In this document: positions 11,284 to 64,000 of the stretch, in pieces
How positions within the stretch are numbered: position 1 is the stretch's first letter
Layout of the letters: every line of letters begins with the position of its first letter
Virus record (IMG/VR): IMGVR_UViG_3300035180_001778
Coordinates: 186,001 to 250,000 of that record
DNA length: 64,000 bases
Strand: one strand, 5' to 3'
Notes under the pieces: generated by a model
The model's database searches: none
Told to the model about the DNA's origin: nothing
What the model saw: the letters and a program-made list of their open reading frames with translations, nothing else
Translations under genes and position numbers: made by a program

Positions 11284-11340
11284 TGAGAATTCTCCGGGGG
11301 TGGAAGGGGGTCGCTCAGAGGATCTGAGCGACTCAGGCCC

Positions 11341-14310
11341 TCAGCCGAGGTTCTTGATGGTCTGGAGAATCGGCCGGATGTGGGGACGCATCGCCGGGTT
11401 CTTCGTGGCGAAGTCGATGATCGACGCCTTCAGAGCACGGTAGGAGGCAGCCTGCTTCTGCTGTTCCTGACCCTGGTCCTTGTCGTCCTTCTTCTCGTCC
11501 TTCTTGTCGTCCCCCTTGCCCTTCATGTGCTCAAGGAACTGGGGAGGCACCTGTCCACCCTGCTTCTGCTGTTCCTGGGACTGCTGAGCCTTCTCCTGTT
11601 GCTCTTCCTGAGCAACCTTGTCCGCGAGGACGATGAAGTCGTACGCGGCGGAGGGGTTGGTGTATGCCATTTCGGCGGCCTGCTTGCGGATTACGGCGGA
11701 TGCGCTCATGGGTTCTTCTCCTGTAGCAACATAAACGGATCCGTGAGCAGCGGCTTCATGGACCGTCAACAGCGTTTCGTCTTCGGACTTCCCAGCCAAC
11801 CGAGCGAGAAGGGAATTGTACGTCTTGTGGTCGAAACCCGCAGAGTACCTCCCGTCTTCGAGCGTTTGAATGGCGAGGTCAAGAGCGGCCCGTAGCTGGG
11901 TGTCCCGCTCAATTCCCTCCACAGACTTCGACAACACAGGGGCCTTGAGCCACTCCCTTGCCGATTTGAGGACCTTCGTGTAGTCCTTCTCCCCAAGGTC
12001 ACGATCGTGGACTTGATTCCACTTCGTATAGGGGGCGAAGCCCTCATGCCCCTTCGGGTAGGGGGCAACCCCCCAATAGACAGCCTGGCGGTTCTGAGGA
12101 CCCATCGACTTGCACCCTGAATAAGAAGAAAACGAGGCTGTCACCTGGCGATTTTGCTCGTCCCAGAGCCGTTCCCGCTCCTCTTCCTGGTCCTCACCCC
12201 CCAAACCATACCGGACCGGCTTCGCCGGGGGCTCAGGGAGTTCAGGTTCCGGAGGCAGCTCAGGAGCTTCAGGCAAGTCCAGATCCGGCGGAGGCTTCGG
12301 AGCCACGGGGGGCTTCGGCGGTTCCATGCCCTCTGTGGGGGACTCGCGATAGTCCCCCACAGAGGGCATGGCTTCTTGCACGAGCTTCTGGTACTTGACC
12401 TTCTCCTTGACGTACTTTCGGTACTCCTTGTCGAACGCCTTTGCCTGCTCCTTGTACTCGTCGATGGTCCCCTCATGCTTCGAGCGGAGCTTCTCGATGA
12501 TCTTGTCGTGCTTGTCGATGACCTTCTGAACAACCTTCTCGTACCGATCCATGGTCCGCGTCACGAGCTTCTCATGACGGGCAGTCTCAGAATCGAAGAG
12601 CTGGCGCTCGTACTTGTCGACATGGTTCCGAACGAAGGGGTACTTCTCCGGGTTGAGAGTCTGAACATGCTTCAGAATTCGGGTCCGAAATGCCCCCGCC
12701 GGATCCTGAGTAATAGCCGTTGGCGGGTATAGCCGAGAGCGATCCATGAGGAACCGGCTGCCGTCGACCACCCCACGAGCAATGTCCGTAGGCCCCTGAT
12801 GCTCCGAGATGTGCTCAGGAGAGGAGGGGTCTAGAAAACGAGCACGAGCCGTCTGGTAGTCGCGAGCCTGGAAGTAGGAGACCGCAAGACGCTCGGCTGC
12901 CGGGTTGCTCTTCGTGAACTCCAGGACGTTCTTGATCGTCCCGGGGGCGATCTTCTCATCCTTGCCTTCCGTCAGAACCTTCTGGAATACCTTCGCGGCC
13001 AGCTCCTTCGACTGGGCGTTGTCCTTCTCAGGGTCGACCTGCTCGCCTTCCTTCGGCGGCTTCTGCTGTAGAAGGAAGGCAGAGAGGAAGTCGGCCAACG
13101 CCGGGGGAGCCCCCAACGTGCGGGTGAGCGACCGGGTCACCTGGTCATGCGCAGCAAGGCTCAAAGCCACCGTTCGATTTCGGTGTTGAGCCCCAGCTTC
13201 AGCCTGCTCTTCAGGTGAAAGCTCGGTGAACGGGATCTCATTTCCAGCCTGGTCCTTCCCTGTCTTCGGAAGAGGGACCTTCGTGGGATCCGGCTGAAAC
13301 CAATGTTGGGCCTTCCCAACCAGCTTCTCCGCCGCCTTTGCCCCCATGTCACCCGAGCGGGCAGCGTGGTAGGTCGCAAGGATATCCGCCACATCATCCG
13401 GATGGAGGTTCGCATCGAGCAAGCCCTCCCGCATGGCACCGCGGGGAAGGTTTTCGAGAATGGCTGACTTCGCAGCCATTTGCTCCCACTCTTCCGCTTG
13501 ACGCCTCTTCGGCTCAGGGGTCTTGCCCTTTTCCTTCGGAGCCTCTTCAGGGGCCTTCTCAGGCTCTTTCTCGTCTTCCTTGGGCTCCTCGTTGCCCTCA
13601 TCAGGTTCCGGAGGCGTACCAGGGTCTTCCCCCTTCGGAGCCTCGTCAGGGACCTTCTCAGCTTCCGGGGCCTTGGGACTCTCGGGGTCTTTGGGCGCTT
13701 CTTGAGTCTTGGGGGGGTTCTTCTTCCCCTGGTTCAGGACCTTGACGAGCTGCCCAAGCGTCTTGACGCCTTCAGGAAGAGGGCGCCCCCGCATCATGAT
13801 CTCGGCGGGCAGATTGGGAGTGCTCTTCGCCACGTACCCGCCACCTTGCGAGGTCGGGTTGAGCAGGTCCTTGAAGACAGACGCCAGCTCGGGATCCGCC
13901 TTCGAGGCGTCCCATAGCTTCTTGCCCTGTGCGTAGGATTCGTGATCCTCGGGCGCCCATGCCGGTCCCGAGTCCCCCTCTTCGGGCAAGGAGTACTCGT
14001 CGGAGCGTTGCTTCAACGTCTCCGGCTTGATGTAGGTGGTCTCCCCTGTCTCCTTGCGGACAACCTTGACTTTCCCGTTGTCCTTCGCGGCTTCGAGGAA
14101 GCGATCGAGGATACGGCCCCCCAAAGAACCCTTGTAGTTGAGTGACAAGTCCTTGTCGGACTCCTTCAAGTCAGGGTCGGCTTCAGGACGCATGTCTTCC
14201 CGACGACGATCCCGCCGAGGAGGCTTGATCTTCGGGGCGGGACGGACAAGGCGCTCAGCCTCTTCCTCTTCCCGCTCATGCGTATCCTTCGTCGCCCAAT
14301 GCAACATCAC
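11341..14310 (-). CDS. Large multi-segment virion protein with Pro/Glu-rich linkers; possible internal starts
   Basis: 989-aa ORF; the internal ATG at 11709 has an AGGAGA Shine-Dalgarno. Confidence 0.65.
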   Translation of the reverse strand: MMLHWATKDTHEREEEEAERLVRPAPKIKPPRRDRRREDMRPEADPDLKESDKDLSLNYKGSLGGRILDRFLEAAKDNGKVKVVRKETGETTYIKPETLKQRSDEYSLPEEGDSGPAWAPEDHESYAQGKKLWDASKADPELASVFKDLLNPTSQGGGYVAKSTPNLPAEIMMRGRPLPEGVKTLGQLVKVLNQGKKNPPKTQEAPKDPESPKAPEAEKVPDEAPKGEDPGTPPEPDEGNEEPKEDEKEPEKAPEEAPKEKGKTPEPKRRQAEEWEQMAAKSAILENLPRGAMREGLLDANLHPDDVADILATYHAARSGDMGAKAAEKLVGKAQHWFQPDPTKVPLPKTGKDQAGNEIPFTELSPEEQAEAGAQHRNRTVALSLAAHDQVTRSLTRTLGAPPALADFLSAFLLQQKPPKEGEQVDPEKDNAQSKELAAKVFQKVLTEGKDEKIAPGTIKNVLEFTKSNPAAERLAVSYFQARDYQTARARFLDPSSPEHISEHQGPTDIARGVVDGSRFLMDRSRLYPPTAITQDPAGAFRTRILKHVQTLNPEKYPFVRNHVDKYERQLFDSETARHEKLVTRTMDRYEKVVQKVIDKHDKIIEKLRSKHEGTIDEYKEQAKAFDKEYRKYVKEKVKYQKLVQEAMPSVGDYRESPTEGMEPPKPPVAPKPPPDLDLPEAPELPPEPELPEPPAKPVRYGLGGEDQEEERERLWDEQNRQVTASFSSYSGCKSMGPQNRQAVYWGVAPYPKGHEGFAPYTKWNQVHDRDLGEKDYTKVLKSAREWLKAPVLSKSVEGIERDTQLRAALDLAIQTLEDGRYSAGFDHKTYNSLLARLAGKSEDETLLTVHEAAAHGSVYVATGEEPMSASAVIRKQAAEMAYTNPSAAYDFIVLADKVAQEEQQEKAQQSQEQQKQGGQVPPQFLEHMKGKGDDKKDEKKDDKDQGQEQQKQAASYRALKASIIDFATKNPAMRPHIRPILQTIKNLG

Positions 14311-56775: not shown

Positions 56776-56860
56776 TGGCGGAAGAAGGAGGATTCGAACC
56801 CCGAGGTTTTTAGGCCCCAACTGTTTAGCAAACAGCCCCCAGCCCTGCTGGTCATCTTCC
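56776..56860 (-). tRNA. tRNA-Ser(GCU), 8/4 fold
   Basis: Acceptor GGAAGAUG/CUUCUUCC, 4-bp T-stem, long variable region, G73, CCA encoded. Confidence 0.85.
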
Positions 56861-57321: not shown

Positions 57322-57407
57322 TGGCGGAAGGCGGAGGAGTCGAACCCCAACGTGTCTAGCGCTCCCTGGCGTTCAAAACCAGTTTGCCTCCAATGGCGGC
57401 GCCTTCC
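57322..57407 (-). tRNA. tRNA-Ser(UGA), 8/4 fold
   Basis: Acceptor GGAAGGCG/CGCCUUCC, T-stem GGGG/CCUC, G73, CCA encoded. Confidence 0.85.
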
Positions 57408-57444: not shown

Positions 57445-58026
57445 TCAAGGGTTTGTAGACGGAATCTCGATGTAGCCCCGGAAGGTAAGAGAGATCCTCT
57501 CACCACACTGCACGGGGCTCTTGGGGATCCTGTGCATGTGCGTGTTCTGCATCCCGGGGGCCATGAGGGCGAGGGACCCGTGCTGGAGCTTCAGCCGCTC
57601 GGGATCGAGCTGAACCGGAAGCTCAGGGCGAGCTTCCATGATCTGCTTGAACCAAATCTCGCGCTCGAATACAAGCGACACGATCCCGATGGGACGGGCG
57701 TCGTCCATCTCGGGCGAGTCATCGGCGTGCCACCCAAGCTGGTCCTTCTGATCCAGGTAGCGGTTGAGGAAGCAGACCTCGAAGGTCGCCCCCGTGAGCG
57801 CTTCGAGGTCCTTCCTGATCTCCCGGATGACGGGATGGTACGGACGAGGCTCGTACAGCCGGCGTCCCTTGCCCCGTCCGTAGACGTAGGGGGTCGGGGT
57901 GTCGTTGCAGTAGTACTCGCACCTGGGAGCGTCACCACGGCGCTCCCAGTCCAGATCATTCCGAAGAGCCGCGAACGCCTTGTCAGGGTCCGAGACGAAC
58001 TTGTAGGTGACGGGGGCCTTTTCCAT
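57445..58026 (-). CDS. AlkB-family 2OG-Fe(II) dioxygenase
   Basis: LNRY, GWHAD, H and RISLTFR motifs. Confidence 0.88.
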   Translation of the reverse strand: MEKAPVTYKFVSDPDKAFAALRNDLDWERRGDAPRCEYYCNDTPTPYVYGRGKGRRLYEPRPYHPVIREIRKDLEALTGATFEVCFLNRYLDQKDQLGWHADDSPEMDDARPIGIVSLVFEREIWFKQIMEARPELPVQLDPERLKLQHGSLALMAPGMQNTHMHRIPKSPVQCGERISLTFRGYIEIPSTNP

Positions 58027-58044
58027 GGGGTCTAGATACACCGA

Positions 58045-58224
58045 AGCGCTCCCCTTTGGGAGGGAGCTTGGACTCGGCGTTTGGGGGTCGTGGCGAGGTG
58101 AAGCGCGAGATCCCCATCCTATGGTCGGGCGGAGAATCCTGTTCGAGGCCTTCCGCGCGACACCGACCGGGGTTCCTGGTTGAGGACTCCCGGCTGTCCA
58201 AGCTCCCTTCCAGAAGGGAGCGCT
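58045..58224 (-). ncRNA. Structured ncRNA A: 180-nt rod with 29-nt closing stem (6S-like shape)
   Basis: 58045-58073 pairs with 58196-58224 (26/29 Watson-Crick); nested inner helices; own promoter. Confidence 0.6.
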
Positions 58225-58264: not shown

Positions 58265-58545
58265 TTCGTTCGTATTCTGAGAAGAGTCCCCGAACAACCC
58301 CTTGGGACCAGCCTCAAGGCTGTTCGGGACACCGGGATCTCACCCCCAATGCTCTCTTGCCACGTTTTTCCGTCAGAACACCTGGTCGCGTCCTTGCGGC
58401 ACTCTTCGGAAGTCAGCTCGGTTTACGCCGAGCTGCTCCTCTCCGTGGGGACTGCCTTGTATGGCTCCCATCCCCATTCGAGAGCATTTCATGCTGACCG
58501 TGGGGTTTCCACAGTCGAGAGGACTCTTCTCAGAATACGAACGAA
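58265..58545 (-). ncRNA. Structured ncRNA B: multi-hairpin domain closed by a perfect 25-bp stem
   Basis: 58265-58289 is the exact reverse complement of 58521-58545; several hairpins with GNRA-like loops inside. Confidence 0.6.
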
Positions 58546-58547
58546 AC

Positions 58548-58626
58548 AACCAAGGGCGGATTCGAACCGCCTACCAATGGCGACCCTTTTGGAGAGTGCC
58601 CACCGCACCATGCGATGTCCTTGGTT
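58548..58626 (-). ncRNA. Atypical tRNA-like RNA, identity unclear
   Basis: Acceptor AACCAAG/CUUGGUU, perfect T-arm GGCGG-UUCGAAU-CCGCC, long D-stem, irregular anticodon arm. Confidence 0.55.
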
Positions 58627-58632
58627 AAAAAA

Positions 58633-58961: not shown

Positions 58962-59348
58962 CTGAATAGTCGATCTGTGTGGCCGCTCAGGTGCAATCAC
59001 GGTAGTCATGTACCGGAGGATTGCCGATCCCGCCGCCTGGGTCTTCGGTCCGGGGGTGCCAGTTCGCCCTCTACGCTGGCACCCTTGTCCTTCCACACAG
59101 AATCAGAAACCTCAAGTCAGACCTACGTGGTCTTGACGTTGGCCGTTCCGGTGAGTCATGTCACCGAGGCTGCTCCCGCGTTGGCGTTGGGGTCTTGGGT
59201 CAGTGTTGGCGTCGAGTATCTTACCCACCTTGGAGGCATGGGTACCTTCTGAGCGCGCTTCTGACTTGTCCCTGCCACGCAGGCCTGACTTGAGGCGTCG
59301 TACTATTCAGTTGTCAATGACCGAGTCGGCTTTCGTTCTCCGTCTCGT
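58962..59348 (-). ncRNA. Structured ncRNA C (about 390 nt)
   Basis: 21-bp helix 59110-59130/59275-59295 with two G-U pairs on the minus strand; closing helix 58962-58970/59302-59310; twin CAUGAC-loop hairpins. Confidence 0.6.
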
Positions 59349-59354
59349 AGTAGT

Positions 59355-59382
59355 TCTACAGTCTGAGTCGTTCCCTGATCAA
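59355..59382 (-). promoter_or_regulatory. Phage promoter TTGATC-N16-TGTAGA (ncRNA C)
   Basis: Exact motif and spacing. Confidence 0.7.
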
Positions 59383-59402
59383 CCTCGGGGTGTTTTTTCT
59401 TG

Positions 59403-59551
59403 AGGTTCGGGTTGAGCAGAGCACAACCTTCGTGCTGACTCGAACAGCCACACCCAACCTTGGGATACCGGACTCGAACCGGAATACAGAGGCTTATGCT
59501 GCCCCTGTGAGATACCCTTCTCTCCAGTTGTGCTCTGCTCAACCCGAACCT
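59403..59551 (-). ncRNA. Structured ncRNA D: perfect 25-bp stem enclosing tRNA-like arms
   Basis: 59403-59427 is the exact reverse complement of 59527-59551; two UUCGAGU T-loops inside. Confidence 0.6.
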
Positions 59552-59553
59552 AG

Positions 59554-59638
59554 CGGAAGATAGAGGCGTCGAACCCCGGCAGATAAATCCGCCACACCGT
59601 TTTCCAAACGGGCCTCGCTCCGAGCGAGAATATCTTCC
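59554..59638 (-). tRNA. tRNA-Ser(GGA), 8/4 fold
   Basis: Acceptor GGAAGAUA/UAUCUUCC, 6-bp D-stem, long variable arm. Confidence 0.8.
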
Positions 59639-59644
59639 AAAACG

Positions 59645-59762
59645 TGGGGGAGTGTCCAGGAATCGAACCTGGCTAGCTTTTCAGCAGGTCATTGAGAGAA
59701 GGAGCATGTGGCCACATGCTCAAACCTCATAAAAACCCTCGTCTTCCAAGACGAACACTCCC
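59645..59762 (-). ncRNA. tRNA-His-like RNA with greatly extended anticodon arm
   Basis: G-1:C73-type acceptor with CCA, perfect T-arm, 118 nt long. Confidence 0.55.
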
Positions 59763-59764
59763 TT

Positions 59765-59834
59765 TTTGCCGAGGGGAGTTGAACCCCCAACCTTCCCCTT
59801 GTGGGGGATGTTCTACCATTGGAACTACGGCTAC
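59765..59834 (-). pseudogene. Degenerate tRNA
   Basis: Intact D- and T-arms, only a 4-bp acceptor, 5-nt anticodon loop CACAA. Confidence 0.55.
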
Positions 59835-60230: not shown

Positions 60231-61156
60231 CTACTGCGTCTCGGAAATGACGCGGAGCGTATGGTAGAACTGCGGTGCGTCATTCTCGTTCGGGATCCCG
60301 GCGGAGTTGCCGTCGTTGACCTCGATCACCCACCACTTCCCCTCGACATCCTGTGCAATGTCCAGGGCAGCGAAGGGGGTGCCCAGACGAGCCCCCACAG
60401 CTTGGAGCCAGGAAGCCGGGGATGCGCGTCGATGCTCTCGATGTAGGTAGCCCCCTCCGTCCAGTACCGATAGGTCGCGAAGGGCTGCCCCCTCAAGAAG
60501 AAGGTGCGGAACTCCTGAACCAGGGGCATCCGGCTCTTCGTGTGAATGCCCACTTGCTTGAGGTTCAAGAACTCGCGGAAGACCAAGCCTCCGTAGAAGT
60601 CGTCACCCTGCAACCGGATGAAGTTCGAAGCGACTCGGGTCACCTCCGTGGCGTCGCTCGCATCACGGATGAAGCAGGCGTCGAACCACTCGTGCTTCCG
60701 GCTCTTGAGGAAGTCCTTCACCATCACCGGCTTCGGGCCGAAGTTCATCTCCACAAGTGCGGCGACCTGCTCCATGGTCGGAGGCTTCTTCCACGAGATG
60801 ATCGAAGACCTCGGCGTCAGCTCCTTCAGATCGGCGTACCACCGAGGGAGGTCGTGCGACCACATGTAGTTCTCGGGGGTCGTGAGAAGACCCGGGACCA
60901 GCTCGACGAGCTGCTCGAACTCTTGGGGCTTGAGAATACACCCCCGGTAGAGAGCCGGACCCTTGATGCCGCTCCAGTGCTGTCGGTTGAGTGCCTCGTT
61001 TTCGGGAGTCACTCGGAAGGGCTCCCCGAAGACCCCGCCGCTCAAGAACGCGATCTGAAATCCAACCGAACGCGCAACTTCGATCTCGCCCACCCAGGAC
61101 GGGTCAGGAGTTCGGATCGTTCCGGGTTGTGCGGGGAATACCAGAGTGCAGTCCAT
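60231..61156 (-). pseudogene. ATP-grasp (R2K-like) protein, frameshifted near 60420
   Basis: VKDFLKSRKHEW and EFRTFF are in frame; the conserved tail LDIAQ...WWVIEVNDG is in the -1 frame and ends at TAG 60231-60233. Confidence 0.75.
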
Positions 61157-62064: not shown

Positions 62065-62081
62065 GGCTAGCCATACACCAG

Positions 62082-62168
62082 CGGAAGAAGGAGGAGTCGA
62101 ACCCCGGGCAGGTTTCCCCACCCACTTCGCTTTCCAAGCGAGCCCCGCTCCGAGCAGGAACATCTTCC
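62082..62168 (-). tRNA. tRNA-Ser(GGA), 8/4 fold (second copy)
   Basis: Acceptor GGAAGAUG/CUUCUUCC, T-stem GGGG/CCUC, long variable arm. Confidence 0.8.
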
Positions 62169-62964: not shown

Positions 62965-63525
62965 TCAGCCCGAGGCCTGGTTCTGCTGGAACCCCACGAG
63001 GAAGGGTTCCCAGAGGTCCGACTTGACGTCATGCCGGATCTGGGGAGCCCCCAACGGCAGAGTCTTCGGAGCGTGCGGATGCGCGATGCCCTTCCACGTT
63101 GCCGGGGGCTTGAGCCTCATGCCCGCTTCTGCCGGCGTGCGACCAGCCTTGCGGCCGTTGCACGGGTAGCAGCTCGTCACGATGTTCTCCCACACCGTCT
63201 TCCCACCCTGGCGCCTCGGAACCACATGGTCGTAGTTCAGGTCCTTCCGCGACTTGGTGGTGCCGCAGTAGCAGCACATGAAGTTGTCGCGAGCGAAGAC
63301 GTTCTCCCGTGAGAACTTGACGCCCCGCTTGCGATACGGGACGACCTTCTTGAGCATGGCGACCGCGGGCATCTTGACGACCTGCCCATCACGCTCGCAG
63401 AGGACCTCGTCGTACTCTTCCAGGATTTGGATTTTGCCGTTGCAGAAGTCGACCATTGCGACCTGCCACGGCACGACTCTGTGTGGGGCCATCCACGAGT
63501 TCAAGATCAGCGTATGCGAGTTCAT
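62965..63525 (-). CDS. HNH endonuclease (McrA-like)
   Basis: Start MNSH at 63525; FSRENVFARDNFMCCYCG, DHVVP and WENIVTSCYPCN motifs. Confidence 0.88.
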   Translation of the reverse strand: MNSHTLILNSWMAPHRVVPWQVAMVDFCNGKIQILEEYDEVLCERDGQVVKMPAVAMLKKVVPYRKRGVKFSRENVFARDNFMCCYCGTTKSRKDLNYDHVVPRRQGGKTVWENIVTSCYPCNGRKAGRTPAEAGMRLKPPATWKGIAHPHAPKTLPLGAPQIRHDVKSDLWEPFLVGFQQNQASG

Positions 63526-63577
63526 GGGACACCTTCGTGATGCGCCCCAACTTGGAGCGGCTACCGTTTCAATTGCA

Positions 63578-63654
63578 TGGTGCCCGCCGGGGGATTCGAA
63601 CCCCCAACCTTCCGTTTTTGAGGCGGACGCCGCTGCCAGTTGGGCTAGACGGGC
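63578..63654 (-). tRNA. tRNA-Leu(CAA) with short variable loop
   Basis: Acceptor GCCCGUC/GGCGGGC, A73, CCA, loop CUCAAAA, 5-nt variable region. Confidence 0.75.
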
Positions 63655-63708
63655 ATAATACAGGAAGGCCCTGGTTGCGATCAACCAAGGCCTTCCAATT
63701 CGAGAATT

Positions 63709-64000
63709 TGGAGCTGCCGGGAATCGAACCCGGGTCCGCAAAGCTTCCGTTCCGCTTTCGTTTACGTGCGTAGCCGCCATATCCCTGGCGGCTGGGTTCG
63801 CGGATTTGGCCGCGAACTATCTCGTCTGCTTGTCTCGAAGGGGTAGCCGCCGAGCACGCTTCCCCTTCCAGCCCTGTGGGTTGACACCGGAAATCCAGCT
63901 ACTAGGACGATCTTGCTGGCCGATGGTCACTACGCAGCCATCTGCATGGGGACGAGAGCGTTGTCGTTCGCAGGTATACGTCTCGATTGATTACGGCGGG
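63709..64000 (-). ncRNA. ssrA: tmRNA (5' end outside the window); tag ANDNALVPMQMAA
   Basis: 3' end GCGGACCCGGGUUCGAUUCCCGGCAGCUCCA; tag ORF 63971-63930 ends in AA followed by stop. Confidence 0.9.

Follow-up and report, generated by a model that had tools for sequence, protein, structure and literature searches.

What is encoded in the unannotated spacers of phage transfer RNA (tRNA) arrays, which to our knowledge have rarely been examined? The question is raised here by a 149-nt element, designated element D, in a 64,000-nt stretch of DNA comprising bases 186001–250000 of the 350,469-bp IMG/VR virus record IMGVR_UViG_3300035180_001778; this whole stretch is referred to below as the window, and positions are those of the window unless a contig or the genome is named. 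Element D occupies the minus strand from 59551 down to 59403, the same strand as the tRNA array in which it lies. A preliminary description had pictured it as a tRNA-like body mounted on a long stem, and had suggested either an unchargeable tRNA-Met-like decoy or a Y-RNA-like combination of long stem and tRNA mimic. The reading tentatively favoured here is that element D is a genuine, selected, tRNA-derived non-coding RNA (ncRNA) gene that acts by tRNA-shape mimicry, and that it is neither a tRNA nor a pseudogene. It is conserved with compensatory changes, it is located in a tRNA island on the tRNA strand, and it abuts an upstream CCA-less tRNA or tRNA-like gene. The structure is real, conserved and new as a family, while there are precedents for ncRNAs of its kind, which mimic tRNA and are mounted on a terminal stem.

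All the parts named in the preliminary description, including the perfect 25-bp stem, were found on the minus strand of 59403–59551, and the minimum free energy (MFE) fold, itself a predicted structure, reproduces every helix that had been listed. In the 5′ to 3′ direction of the minus strand the parts are as follows.

59527–59551, minus strand: terminal helix, 5′ strand, 25 nt; a perfect inverted repeat, nucleotides 1–25 pairing with 125–149 in the MFE fold
59523–59526, minus strand: linker UGGA, preceding hairpin 1
59509–59522, minus strand: hairpin 1, D-arm-like, GAGAA-GGGU-AUCUC (from sequence and MFE fold)
59486–59508, minus strand: hairpin 2, an anticodon-like arm of 8 bp with loop AGCAUAA (from MFE fold)
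59468–59482, minus strand: T arm 1, CCGG-UUCGAGU-CCGG (from sequence and MFE fold)
59453–59464, minus strand: hairpin 3, CCCA-AGGU-UGGG, readable as a second D arm or as a variable arm (from MFE fold)
59434–59448, minus strand: T arm 2, GCUG-UUCGAGU-CAGC (from sequence and MFE fold)
59428–59433, minus strand: 6-nt linker after T arm 2
59403–59427, minus strand: terminal helix, 3′ strand, 25 nt; a perfect inverted repeat, with covariation against the homologue described below

The terminal helix thus has 25 Watson–Crick pairs and one inner U–G pair, 26 uninterrupted pairs in all, and encloses five hairpins in a six-helix junction. As had been described, there is no acceptor end: both ends are locked in the closed helix, with no single-stranded 3′ end. 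The D-like arm had been written as GAGA-AGGGUA-UCUC, and that sequence is present; over a canonical 4-bp D stem with an 8-nt D loop, the homologue favours a register of five positions, GAGAA-GGGU-AUCUC in the window copy against GAGGC-GGGU-GCCUC in the other.

The MFE of element D is −84.2 kcal/mol, against −48.8 ± 4.0 kcal/mol for 200 dinucleotide shuffles (z-score, z = −8.8), none of which folded as well. The opposite strand folds almost equally well, owing to the perfectly palindromic terminal helix; only on the minus strand, which is the tRNA strand, are the T-loop and GG motifs meaningful. Perfect 25-bp inverted repeats enclosing a loop of at least 30 nt occur twice in the whole 350-kb genome, both times in this spacer of the tRNA island, and element D is single-copy, its helix arms being found nowhere else in that genome. 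A scan for promoters and terminators, otherwise uninformative, found no intrinsic terminator on the minus strand at element D, and an A-rich stretch follows the helix. A protein-coding reading, as a 79-aa open reading frame (ORF) at 59303–59542, was set aside in view of non-triplet indels in the homologue and the lack of any gene call there.

Element D lies within a 2.3-kb stretch that contains no convincing ORF and separates an AlkB-like 2-oxoglutarate (2OG)-Fe(II) oxygenase gene from an R2K ATP-grasp gene. The features that bound the RNA cluster and the element itself are:

57445–58041: AlkB-like 2OG-Fe(II) oxygenase gene, one flank of the RNA cluster
60326–61156: R2K ATP-grasp gene, the other flank of the RNA cluster
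59555–59638, minus strand: Ser(GGA)-like tRNA gene with an 8-bp acceptor stem and no encoded CCA, the presumed co-transcribed upstream neighbour of element D

The flanking R2K protein has one relative with 87% identity, on L175, a 24.5-kb JGI metagenomic phage contig with the same gene order; homologues of this protein with less than 50% identity are found in different gene contexts. The homologue search that the preliminary description had suggested yielded a single diverged homologue of element D, at the same locus on this contig (L175:11491–11638; 102 bits, E = 3.5e-23). It folds alike (z = −10.3), and its terminal helix is again perfect, extending outward to 30–33 pairs (33 uninterrupted). 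Seven of the 25 shared pairs of the terminal helix have changed on both sides and none on one side only, no new G–U pair has arisen, and slid controls gave 0–1; the middle 11 bp are invariant. Over the whole element 10 pairs have changed on both sides, a number matched by none of 500 shuffles and by no slid control. The internal arms have changed as well: in hairpin 1 of L175 an A–U pair has become G–C and an A·A apposition C–G around an unchanged GGGU loop, and in hairpin 3 an A–U pair has become U–A beneath an unchanged NGGU loop. T arm 1 is identical save at loop position 6, and T arm 2 has kept its loop and three of its four stem pairs. The least conserved arm is hairpin 2. Of the CAU-centred arm emphasised in the preliminary description, the sole homologue keeps the pentamer CAUAA, but in a 9-nt loop on a bulged stem of ~5 bp, so that the geometry of an 8-bp stem with a 7-nt loop is lost. 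From the shuffle z-scores, together with a homologue in which pairs have changed on both sides, the structure is far beyond chance and is under selection.

The pace of this change differs from that of its surroundings. A neighbouring RNA, element A (see below), shows only ~8 differing columns of 181 between the two phages, whereas element D is far more diverged with its fold kept; element D is therefore evolving fast under a retained fold, a pattern that, to judge from the sequences, would fit an arms-race molecule. In both phages the element adjoins a tRNA or tRNA-like gene. Its 5′ end in the window lies 2 nt past the discriminator base of the Ser(GGA)-like tRNA, which ARAGORN calls as tRNA-Ser(gga) on the native stretch and which the Rfam tRNA-Sec model scores at a sub-threshold 35.6 bits; in L175 the element starts directly (0 nt) after the discriminator of a tRNA-like gene. 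The latter has a counterpart further upstream in the window (59640–59760, minus strand; L175:11370–11486), with an 8-bp acceptor-type stem, a UGGAA-loop hairpin, a large insertion and a canonical T arm, and this gene is kept in L175, where it stands immediately upstream of element D.

The resemblance of element D to tRNA lies in its arms. Both T arms fit the tRNA consensus G53-UUCGANU-C61, with the loop UUCGAGU closed by a G–C pair; two hairpin loops carry GG(G)U; and both T arms and both of these loops are retained in L175. In tRNA, the GG of the D loop pairs with the T loop. Element D has no 7-bp acceptor stem with a free 3′ discriminator and CCA, and no four-arm cloverleaf. An anticodon arm has a 5-bp stem, a 7-nt loop and U33, but in the window copy the stem is 8 bp long and position 33 is occupied by G. 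Intact, it is not called as a tRNA by ARAGORN, and such calls appear only after deletion of arms in silico. Removal of hairpin 3 and T arm 2 gives a tRNA-Met(CAU) call for the window copy at default settings, which fails for L175. Removal of hairpin 2 and the linker gives a class-II tRNA-Ser(CGA), in which hairpin 1 serves as D arm, T arm 1 as anticodon arm, hairpin 3 as variable arm and T arm 2 as T arm; default settings suffice for the window copy, whereas L175 requires relaxed ones. When the body was aligned locally with the tRNAs of the phage itself, hairpin 3 resembled the D arm of tRNA-Gly(GCC); the other matches were confined to T loops, and no parental tRNA-Met emerged. Because the Met and Ser readings overlap and only the Ser reading works in L175, element D is taken to derive from tRNA, though not from tRNA-Met in particular, and to comprise one protruding arm and possibly two D/T elbow modules.

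Neither Rfam 15, searched at gathering thresholds and at E ≤ 10, nor megablast against cultured phages gave any match to element D. The earlier view of an unchargeable tRNA-like RNA is therefore borne out, by the missing acceptor end, the tRNA strand, the T-arm consensus, the GG loops and the lack of any ARAGORN or Rfam call. The Y-RNA-like design fares less well: a tRNA mimic on a long stem, with arms partly in the order of Yrn1, makes a fair analogy, but membership does not follow, with TROVE gene, Ro-type motif and bulge all missing. The TROVE/Ro60 family PF05731 is absent from the 350-kb record, which is ~73% complete, in a search that matched control genomes and that does not extend to a host-encoded Rsr. 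The Ro-binding stem of YrlA carries a conserved 5′-strand motif, GNCGAAN0-1G (PMC4201824); this motif is absent from the 5′ strand of both copies of element D, in which the helix is perfect and without a bulge. Element D does have a tRNA-like module; its arm order (D-like, anticodon-like, T, hairpin, T) is unlike that of YrlA (T, acceptor-like stem-loop, D) and partly like that of Yrn1. Also absent from the phage record, at the same completeness, are RtcB, RNase III, a CCA-adding enzyme and a reverse transcriptase (PF00078). A retron ncRNA with an a1/a2 closing stem was rejected as a candidate on this last ground, there being no cognate reverse transcriptase. The stem characteristic of RNase III substrates, uninterrupted double-stranded RNA of at least about two helical turns, is present: the window copy has 26 such pairs, L175 has 33.

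How might such an RNA be made, and what might it do? Element D would be transcribed within a polycistronic tRNA precursor, and its 5′ end would be generated by an RNase Z- or RNase E-type cut at the 3′ end of the upstream tRNA. The perfect helix of 25–33 bp may serve as a module for both maturation and stability: host RNase III could cut it as it cuts the stalks of ribosomal RNA (rRNA) processing, or 3′ exonucleases could trim back to it and stop there, and the product would in either case be a closed, nuclease-resistant RNA. Within it, the two GG(G)U loops may dock on the two T loops to form two tRNA-type elbows beside a protruding anticodon-like arm. With no acceptor end the RNA would not be charged, and must therefore act by being bound. 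It is tempting to suggest that it is a mimic or decoy for a host or phage reader of tRNA shape; defence nucleases directed at tRNA, and enzymes that process or modify tRNA, would be examples. A decoy in a conflict over tRNAs would fit the fast evolution, the retained fold and the location among phage tRNAs.

Several points weigh against this reading. The elbow pairing of GG loops with T loops and the decoy role are inferred only, and element D is represented by just two diverged sequences. A perfect Watson–Crick helix with only double changes could reflect correction of a quasipalindrome at the DNA level and not selection on RNA. The element is absent from the relatives G001 and G002 (51–57% GroEL identity) and L271–L275 (70–75%), all of which do have a tRNA array and a transfer-messenger RNA (tmRNA); it is therefore dispensable and young. 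Sequencing runs that contain the element D stretch comprise DNA runs only and no RNA run. No phage-encoded RNase III is present in the record, and no partner protein is identifiable near element D or elsewhere in it.

Some of the same observations would be met if element D were purely a cis-acting processing element, its helix an RNase III site or exonuclease stop for the maturation of odd tRNA neighbours and its body a remnant. Helices of 22–33 bp directly abut tRNA 3′ ends, several unrelated long-helix elements share the one spacer region, and close relatives keep the array without element D. However, the T arms, the GG loops and the compensatory changes in hairpins 1 and 3 have been kept although a mere spacer does not need them, and a plain hairpin would do as a cleavage site, so this account appears unlikely.

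A little less probable again is that element D is specifically an anticodon-loop decoy of tRNA-Met or tRNA-fMet, in which CAUAA would be the bait for a CAU-specific anticodon nuclease, methionyl-tRNA synthetase (MetRS) or TilS, and the rest a scaffold. Enzymes of the VapC type do cut initiator tRNA. The pentamer corresponds to positions 34–38 of the Met, fMet and Ile2 anticodon loops, and is the sole part of hairpin 2 kept in L175, where substitutions and indels have altered its flanks; there is also the tRNA-Met(CAU) call after in-silico removal of hairpin 3 and T arm 2, and ARAGORN finds a single CAU tRNA in the phage. Yet position 33 is G and the stem has 8 bp, not 5; the arm geometry is unstable, with a loop of 9 nt in L175, where the tRNA-Met call fails; a look-alike on contig L228 (see below) has a different loop, UUAGCUU; and five conserved nucleotides across two sequences are weak evidence.

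That element D is non-functional debris or an element acting at the DNA level, whether a recombination scar of tRNA genes, a quasipalindrome, a miniature inverted-repeat transposable element (MITE) or a protein-binding inverted repeat, is very unlikely. A purely Watson–Crick helix with only double changes is what quasipalindrome correction would produce, and stray T arms are common in metagenomic tRNA arrays. Against this, the internal hairpins also carry compensatory changes, and the loops that belong specifically to RNA tertiary structure do not vary; the arms have no second occurrence in the genome and are unrelated among the four long-helix elements of the spacer, and a homologue stands at the same locus. 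Terminal repeats of a MITE or insertion sequence (IS) were rejected for similar reasons, namely the single copy, the unrelated arms of elements A–D, the absence of flanking duplication and the same-locus homologue with covarying arms.

There is scarcely more to recommend element D as the precursor of an unusual chargeable tRNA, its helix trimmed to 7 bp and CCA added to give a class-II Ser-like tRNA with hairpin 2 as an extra arm. The tRNA-Ser(CGA) call after in-silico removal of hairpin 2 and linker (relaxed settings for L175) would suit it, as would the odd Ser-type tRNAs next door and the last T arm of the L228 look-alike, 1 nt from the closing stem. But T arm 1, which would have to be the anticodon arm, exactly fits the T-arm consensus, and a Ser anticodon carries no weight when every T loop can be read as CGA; in L175 the base at position 37 would be U; a spacer of 5–6 nt separates T arm 2 from the helix; a closed helix of 25–33 bp blocks RNase P and RNase Z; and the phage record contains no CCA-adding enzyme. 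Least probable of all is a Y-RNA-like scaffold whose long stem binds a host Ro60/Rsr ring while the tRNA-like module recruits an effector such as polynucleotide phosphorylase (PNPase), since, for all the shared design of terminal stem and tRNA-like domain with T arm, the partial likeness to the D–anticodon–T order of Yrn1 (PMC4201824) and the existence of phage Y RNAs next to phage Ro60 genes, this record has neither a TROVE gene nor RtcB, the helix is perfect and lacks the bulge or GNCGAA-type motif of Ro-binding stems, and no Rfam family matches.

The source of element D is a 350-kb uncultured jumbo phage, the lineage being regarded as uncultured because its best cultured GroEL relatives are only ~45% identical. 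The record has ~59% G+C and an estimated completeness of 73%. Genes on the minus strand of the window include those for a GroEL-type chaperonin, clamp-loader subunits, ribonucleotide reductase, NAD-ligase and a RecD2 helicase. The tRNA island starts at ~56.6 kb of the window, and ARAGORN finds in it 40 tRNA genes and a tmRNA, on the minus strand at genome positions 242.6–265.7 kb. Adjoining the RNA cluster are the AlkB-like oxygenase, an Rv2179c-type DEDDh exoribonuclease and the R2K ATP-grasp enzyme, none of which is tied to element D by the present data. An RNA-ligase-family (PF09414) gene lies at G000:C1:74436–74891 (minus strand), and in L271 and L273 one is found just downstream of GroEL; with the AlkB-like and DEDDh exonuclease genes it suggests a capacity for RNA repair or processing. 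In L274 (6110–7231) and L275 (6594–7715), an IS605 OrfB/TnpB-type gene and a DNA methylase gene stand upstream of GroEL, where the window phage has its RNA cluster. The only other copy of element D in IMG/VR is on a contig 100% identical over 8 kb, and because of that identity it carries no conservation information. Four DNA metagenome runs, from sediment and microbial mat, contain the stretch and show no variant inside element D.

The array itself has several unusual members. At five loci on the minus strand (56776–56860, 57326–57407, 58546–58627, 59555–59638 and 62081–62168) the tRNA-Sec model fits better than the general tRNA model; these have long acceptor and D stems, yet Trp (CCA) or Ser (GGA, GCU) anticodons, and are reminiscent of allo-tRNAs. 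The Trp-like tRNA gene of the relative L271 (4835–4916) is assigned a 4-base anticodon, UCCA, by ARAGORN. Upstream of element D, 59764–59834 (minus strand) scores 37 bits with the Rfam tRNA model and has an apparent anticodon loop of only 5 nt, and its L175 homologue (11297–11367) is called as tRNA-Ser(GGA) by ARAGORN. Elsewhere in the island an HNH endonuclease ORF (62965–63780) overlaps tRNA-Leu (63578–63654). The tmRNA gene, 4 kb from element D, occupies 63708–64000 (minus strand) and runs on to genome position 250060, with the tag ANDNALVPMQMAA; ANDNA-type tmRNA tags are found in relatives also, and may hint at a proteobacterial host. Outside the window, on the opposite strand and far from the array, ARAGORN finds a 73-nt tRNA with anticodon UCA (labelled SeC) at G000:C1:302161–302233 (plus strand), which could be an opal suppressor.

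Element D is one of four long-helix structured RNAs on the minus strand inside 1.5 kb, with z from −5.6 to −9.2.

58045–58224, minus strand: element A, 180 nt; 29-bp arms, imperfect, 90% complementary; z = −6.2
58265–58545, minus strand: element B, 281 nt, multi-hairpin; 25 perfect pairs, 27 uninterrupted; z = −9.2
59110–59295, minus strand: element C, 186 nt; 22-bp helix; z = −5.6
59403–59551, minus strand: element D, 149 nt; 25 perfect pairs, 26 uninterrupted; z = −8.8

The arm sequences of the four are mutually unrelated, and they are therefore not copies of a mobile element. Element A is near-identical at L175:12316–12495. Element B, which starts at the base immediately after tRNA-Trp and contains one population single-nucleotide polymorphism (58418 T>C), is replaced in L175 by a 71-aa ORF; RNAs of its type with 26-bp uninterrupted helices occur at L271:5111–5334 and L273:5082–5313, so that an uninterrupted helix of 26–27 bp is seen in three phages. 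The G–U pairs of these B-type helices lie on the tRNA strand, which argues for helices at the RNA level. Element C is absent from L175, and a similar RNA is found at L273:4775–4960. Closing helices of 22–33 bp are a repeated design of this island.

Is the architecture of element D found more widely? Viral and metagenome contigs were scanned for two T loops 20–40 nt apart. Many loci were obtained, mostly a canonical tRNA with a stray T arm or an acceptor/T minihelix, together with chance matches; no standard tRNA-Ser(CGA) was among them. Over the whole set a GG-loop hairpin between the T arms was present in 20%, against 14% in shuffles, and because it is not enriched no wider class is claimed from the scan. 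A few loci, mostly in tRNA arrays, share the architecture of element D:

L228:3961–4082: 19-bp closing stem with G–U pairs, GGGU hairpin, small hairpin, T arm, GGGGU hairpin, second T arm; 37 bits
L179: look-alike of element D; 34 bits
L198, L199, L216 and L245: common order hairpin(UAGCU)–T–hairpin(GG)–T
L180 and L210/L225: three T arms each

Rfam recognised none of the look-alike loci checked, giving only weak sub-threshold matches to tRNA and RAGATH-36. Because the search pattern itself accounts for part of their score, homology with element D is unproven and they are leads only. Two other arrangements were noticed. In metagenome contigs L182, L201, L192, L238 and L219, the anticodon-loop region of tRNA genes is interrupted by an insertion of ~85 nt, which contains a T-arm-like hairpin; such genes recur in several tRNA arrays. 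In viral contigs L137, L138, L133, L143, L150, L164 and others, a canonical tRNA-Met(CAU) is followed within ~20 nt by an acceptor/T-arm minihelix ending in CCA, an arrangement that is recurrent in phage contigs.

It is a doubtful but appealing generalisation that element D and the neighbouring long-helix RNAs belong to an undescribed class of phage RNA in tRNA islands, comprising closed, nuclease-resistant “double-elbow” mimics that would act as anti-defence decoys or inhibitors of host enzymes that recognise tRNA, with L228, L179, L198/L199/L216/L245, L180 and L210 as further members. Phage tRNA arrays are now regarded as weapons against bacterial defences that cut tRNA. Here, a single spacer of a 350-kb phage houses four large, strongly structured RNAs; at least two have been conserved in a further phage, and among them is an uncharged mimic of tRNA that has two T arms. 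Were its partner a defence nuclease or an enzyme of tRNA processing, element D would represent a new RNA-based counter-defence and a compact natural decoy of the tRNA elbow; if it only guides processing, it would show how jumbo phages mature CCA-less, non-canonical tRNAs. In either case it provides a search image: two T loops 24 nt apart and a long closing helix, within a tRNA array.

Among known systems, the bacterial Y RNAs (Yrn1 of D. radiodurans; YrlA of Salmonella, Mycobacterium and phages) come closest in design, being non-chargeable ncRNAs of ~100–150 nt in which the 5′ end pairs with the 3′ end in a terminal stem, and this stem carries a tRNA-like module with a canonical T arm and a D-like loop. 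In Yrn1 the order of arms is D-like, anticodon-like, T (PMC4201824), which the arm order of element D partly resembles. The differences are that element D has no Ro60 gene nearby or in the record and a perfect duplex without Ro bulge or motif; that it has two T arms and two GG hairpins as against one of each; and that it lies in a tRNA array, not an rsr locus, and matches nothing in Rfam. The tRNA cluster of phage T4 holds two small stable RNAs, and these, with GOLLD and ROOL, share with element D the property of being phage-encoded structured RNAs co-located with tRNA genes; no Rfam family, GOLLD and ROOL included, matches element D, which is much smaller than GOLLD and ROOL and made of recognisable tRNA arms. 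The TMERs of murine gammaherpesvirus 68 (MHV68), which are tRNA-linked hairpin transcripts, and rRNA processing stalks offer a further parallel: a long perfect hairpin stands right at the 3′ end of a tRNA or tRNA-like unit, from which tRNA 3′ processing would free it, and a helix of at least 25 bp is the type of substrate used by RNase III. Element D, however, belongs to a bacterial system and its hairpin encloses a folded tRNA-like body, not a simple loop. The tRNA-like domain of tmRNA likewise joins a T arm and a D-like loop to a long helix, but tmRNA possesses an acceptor end, is charged, and has its long helix in place of the anticodon arm, whereas element D has the helix where an acceptor end would be and lacks a reading frame. 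As for function, phages deploy RNA decoys against defence, among them pseudo-ToxI and RNA anti-CRISPR repeats, and element D may, by analogy and as a conjecture, share with these the concept of a phage RNA that mimics a cellular RNA to titrate a defence protein.

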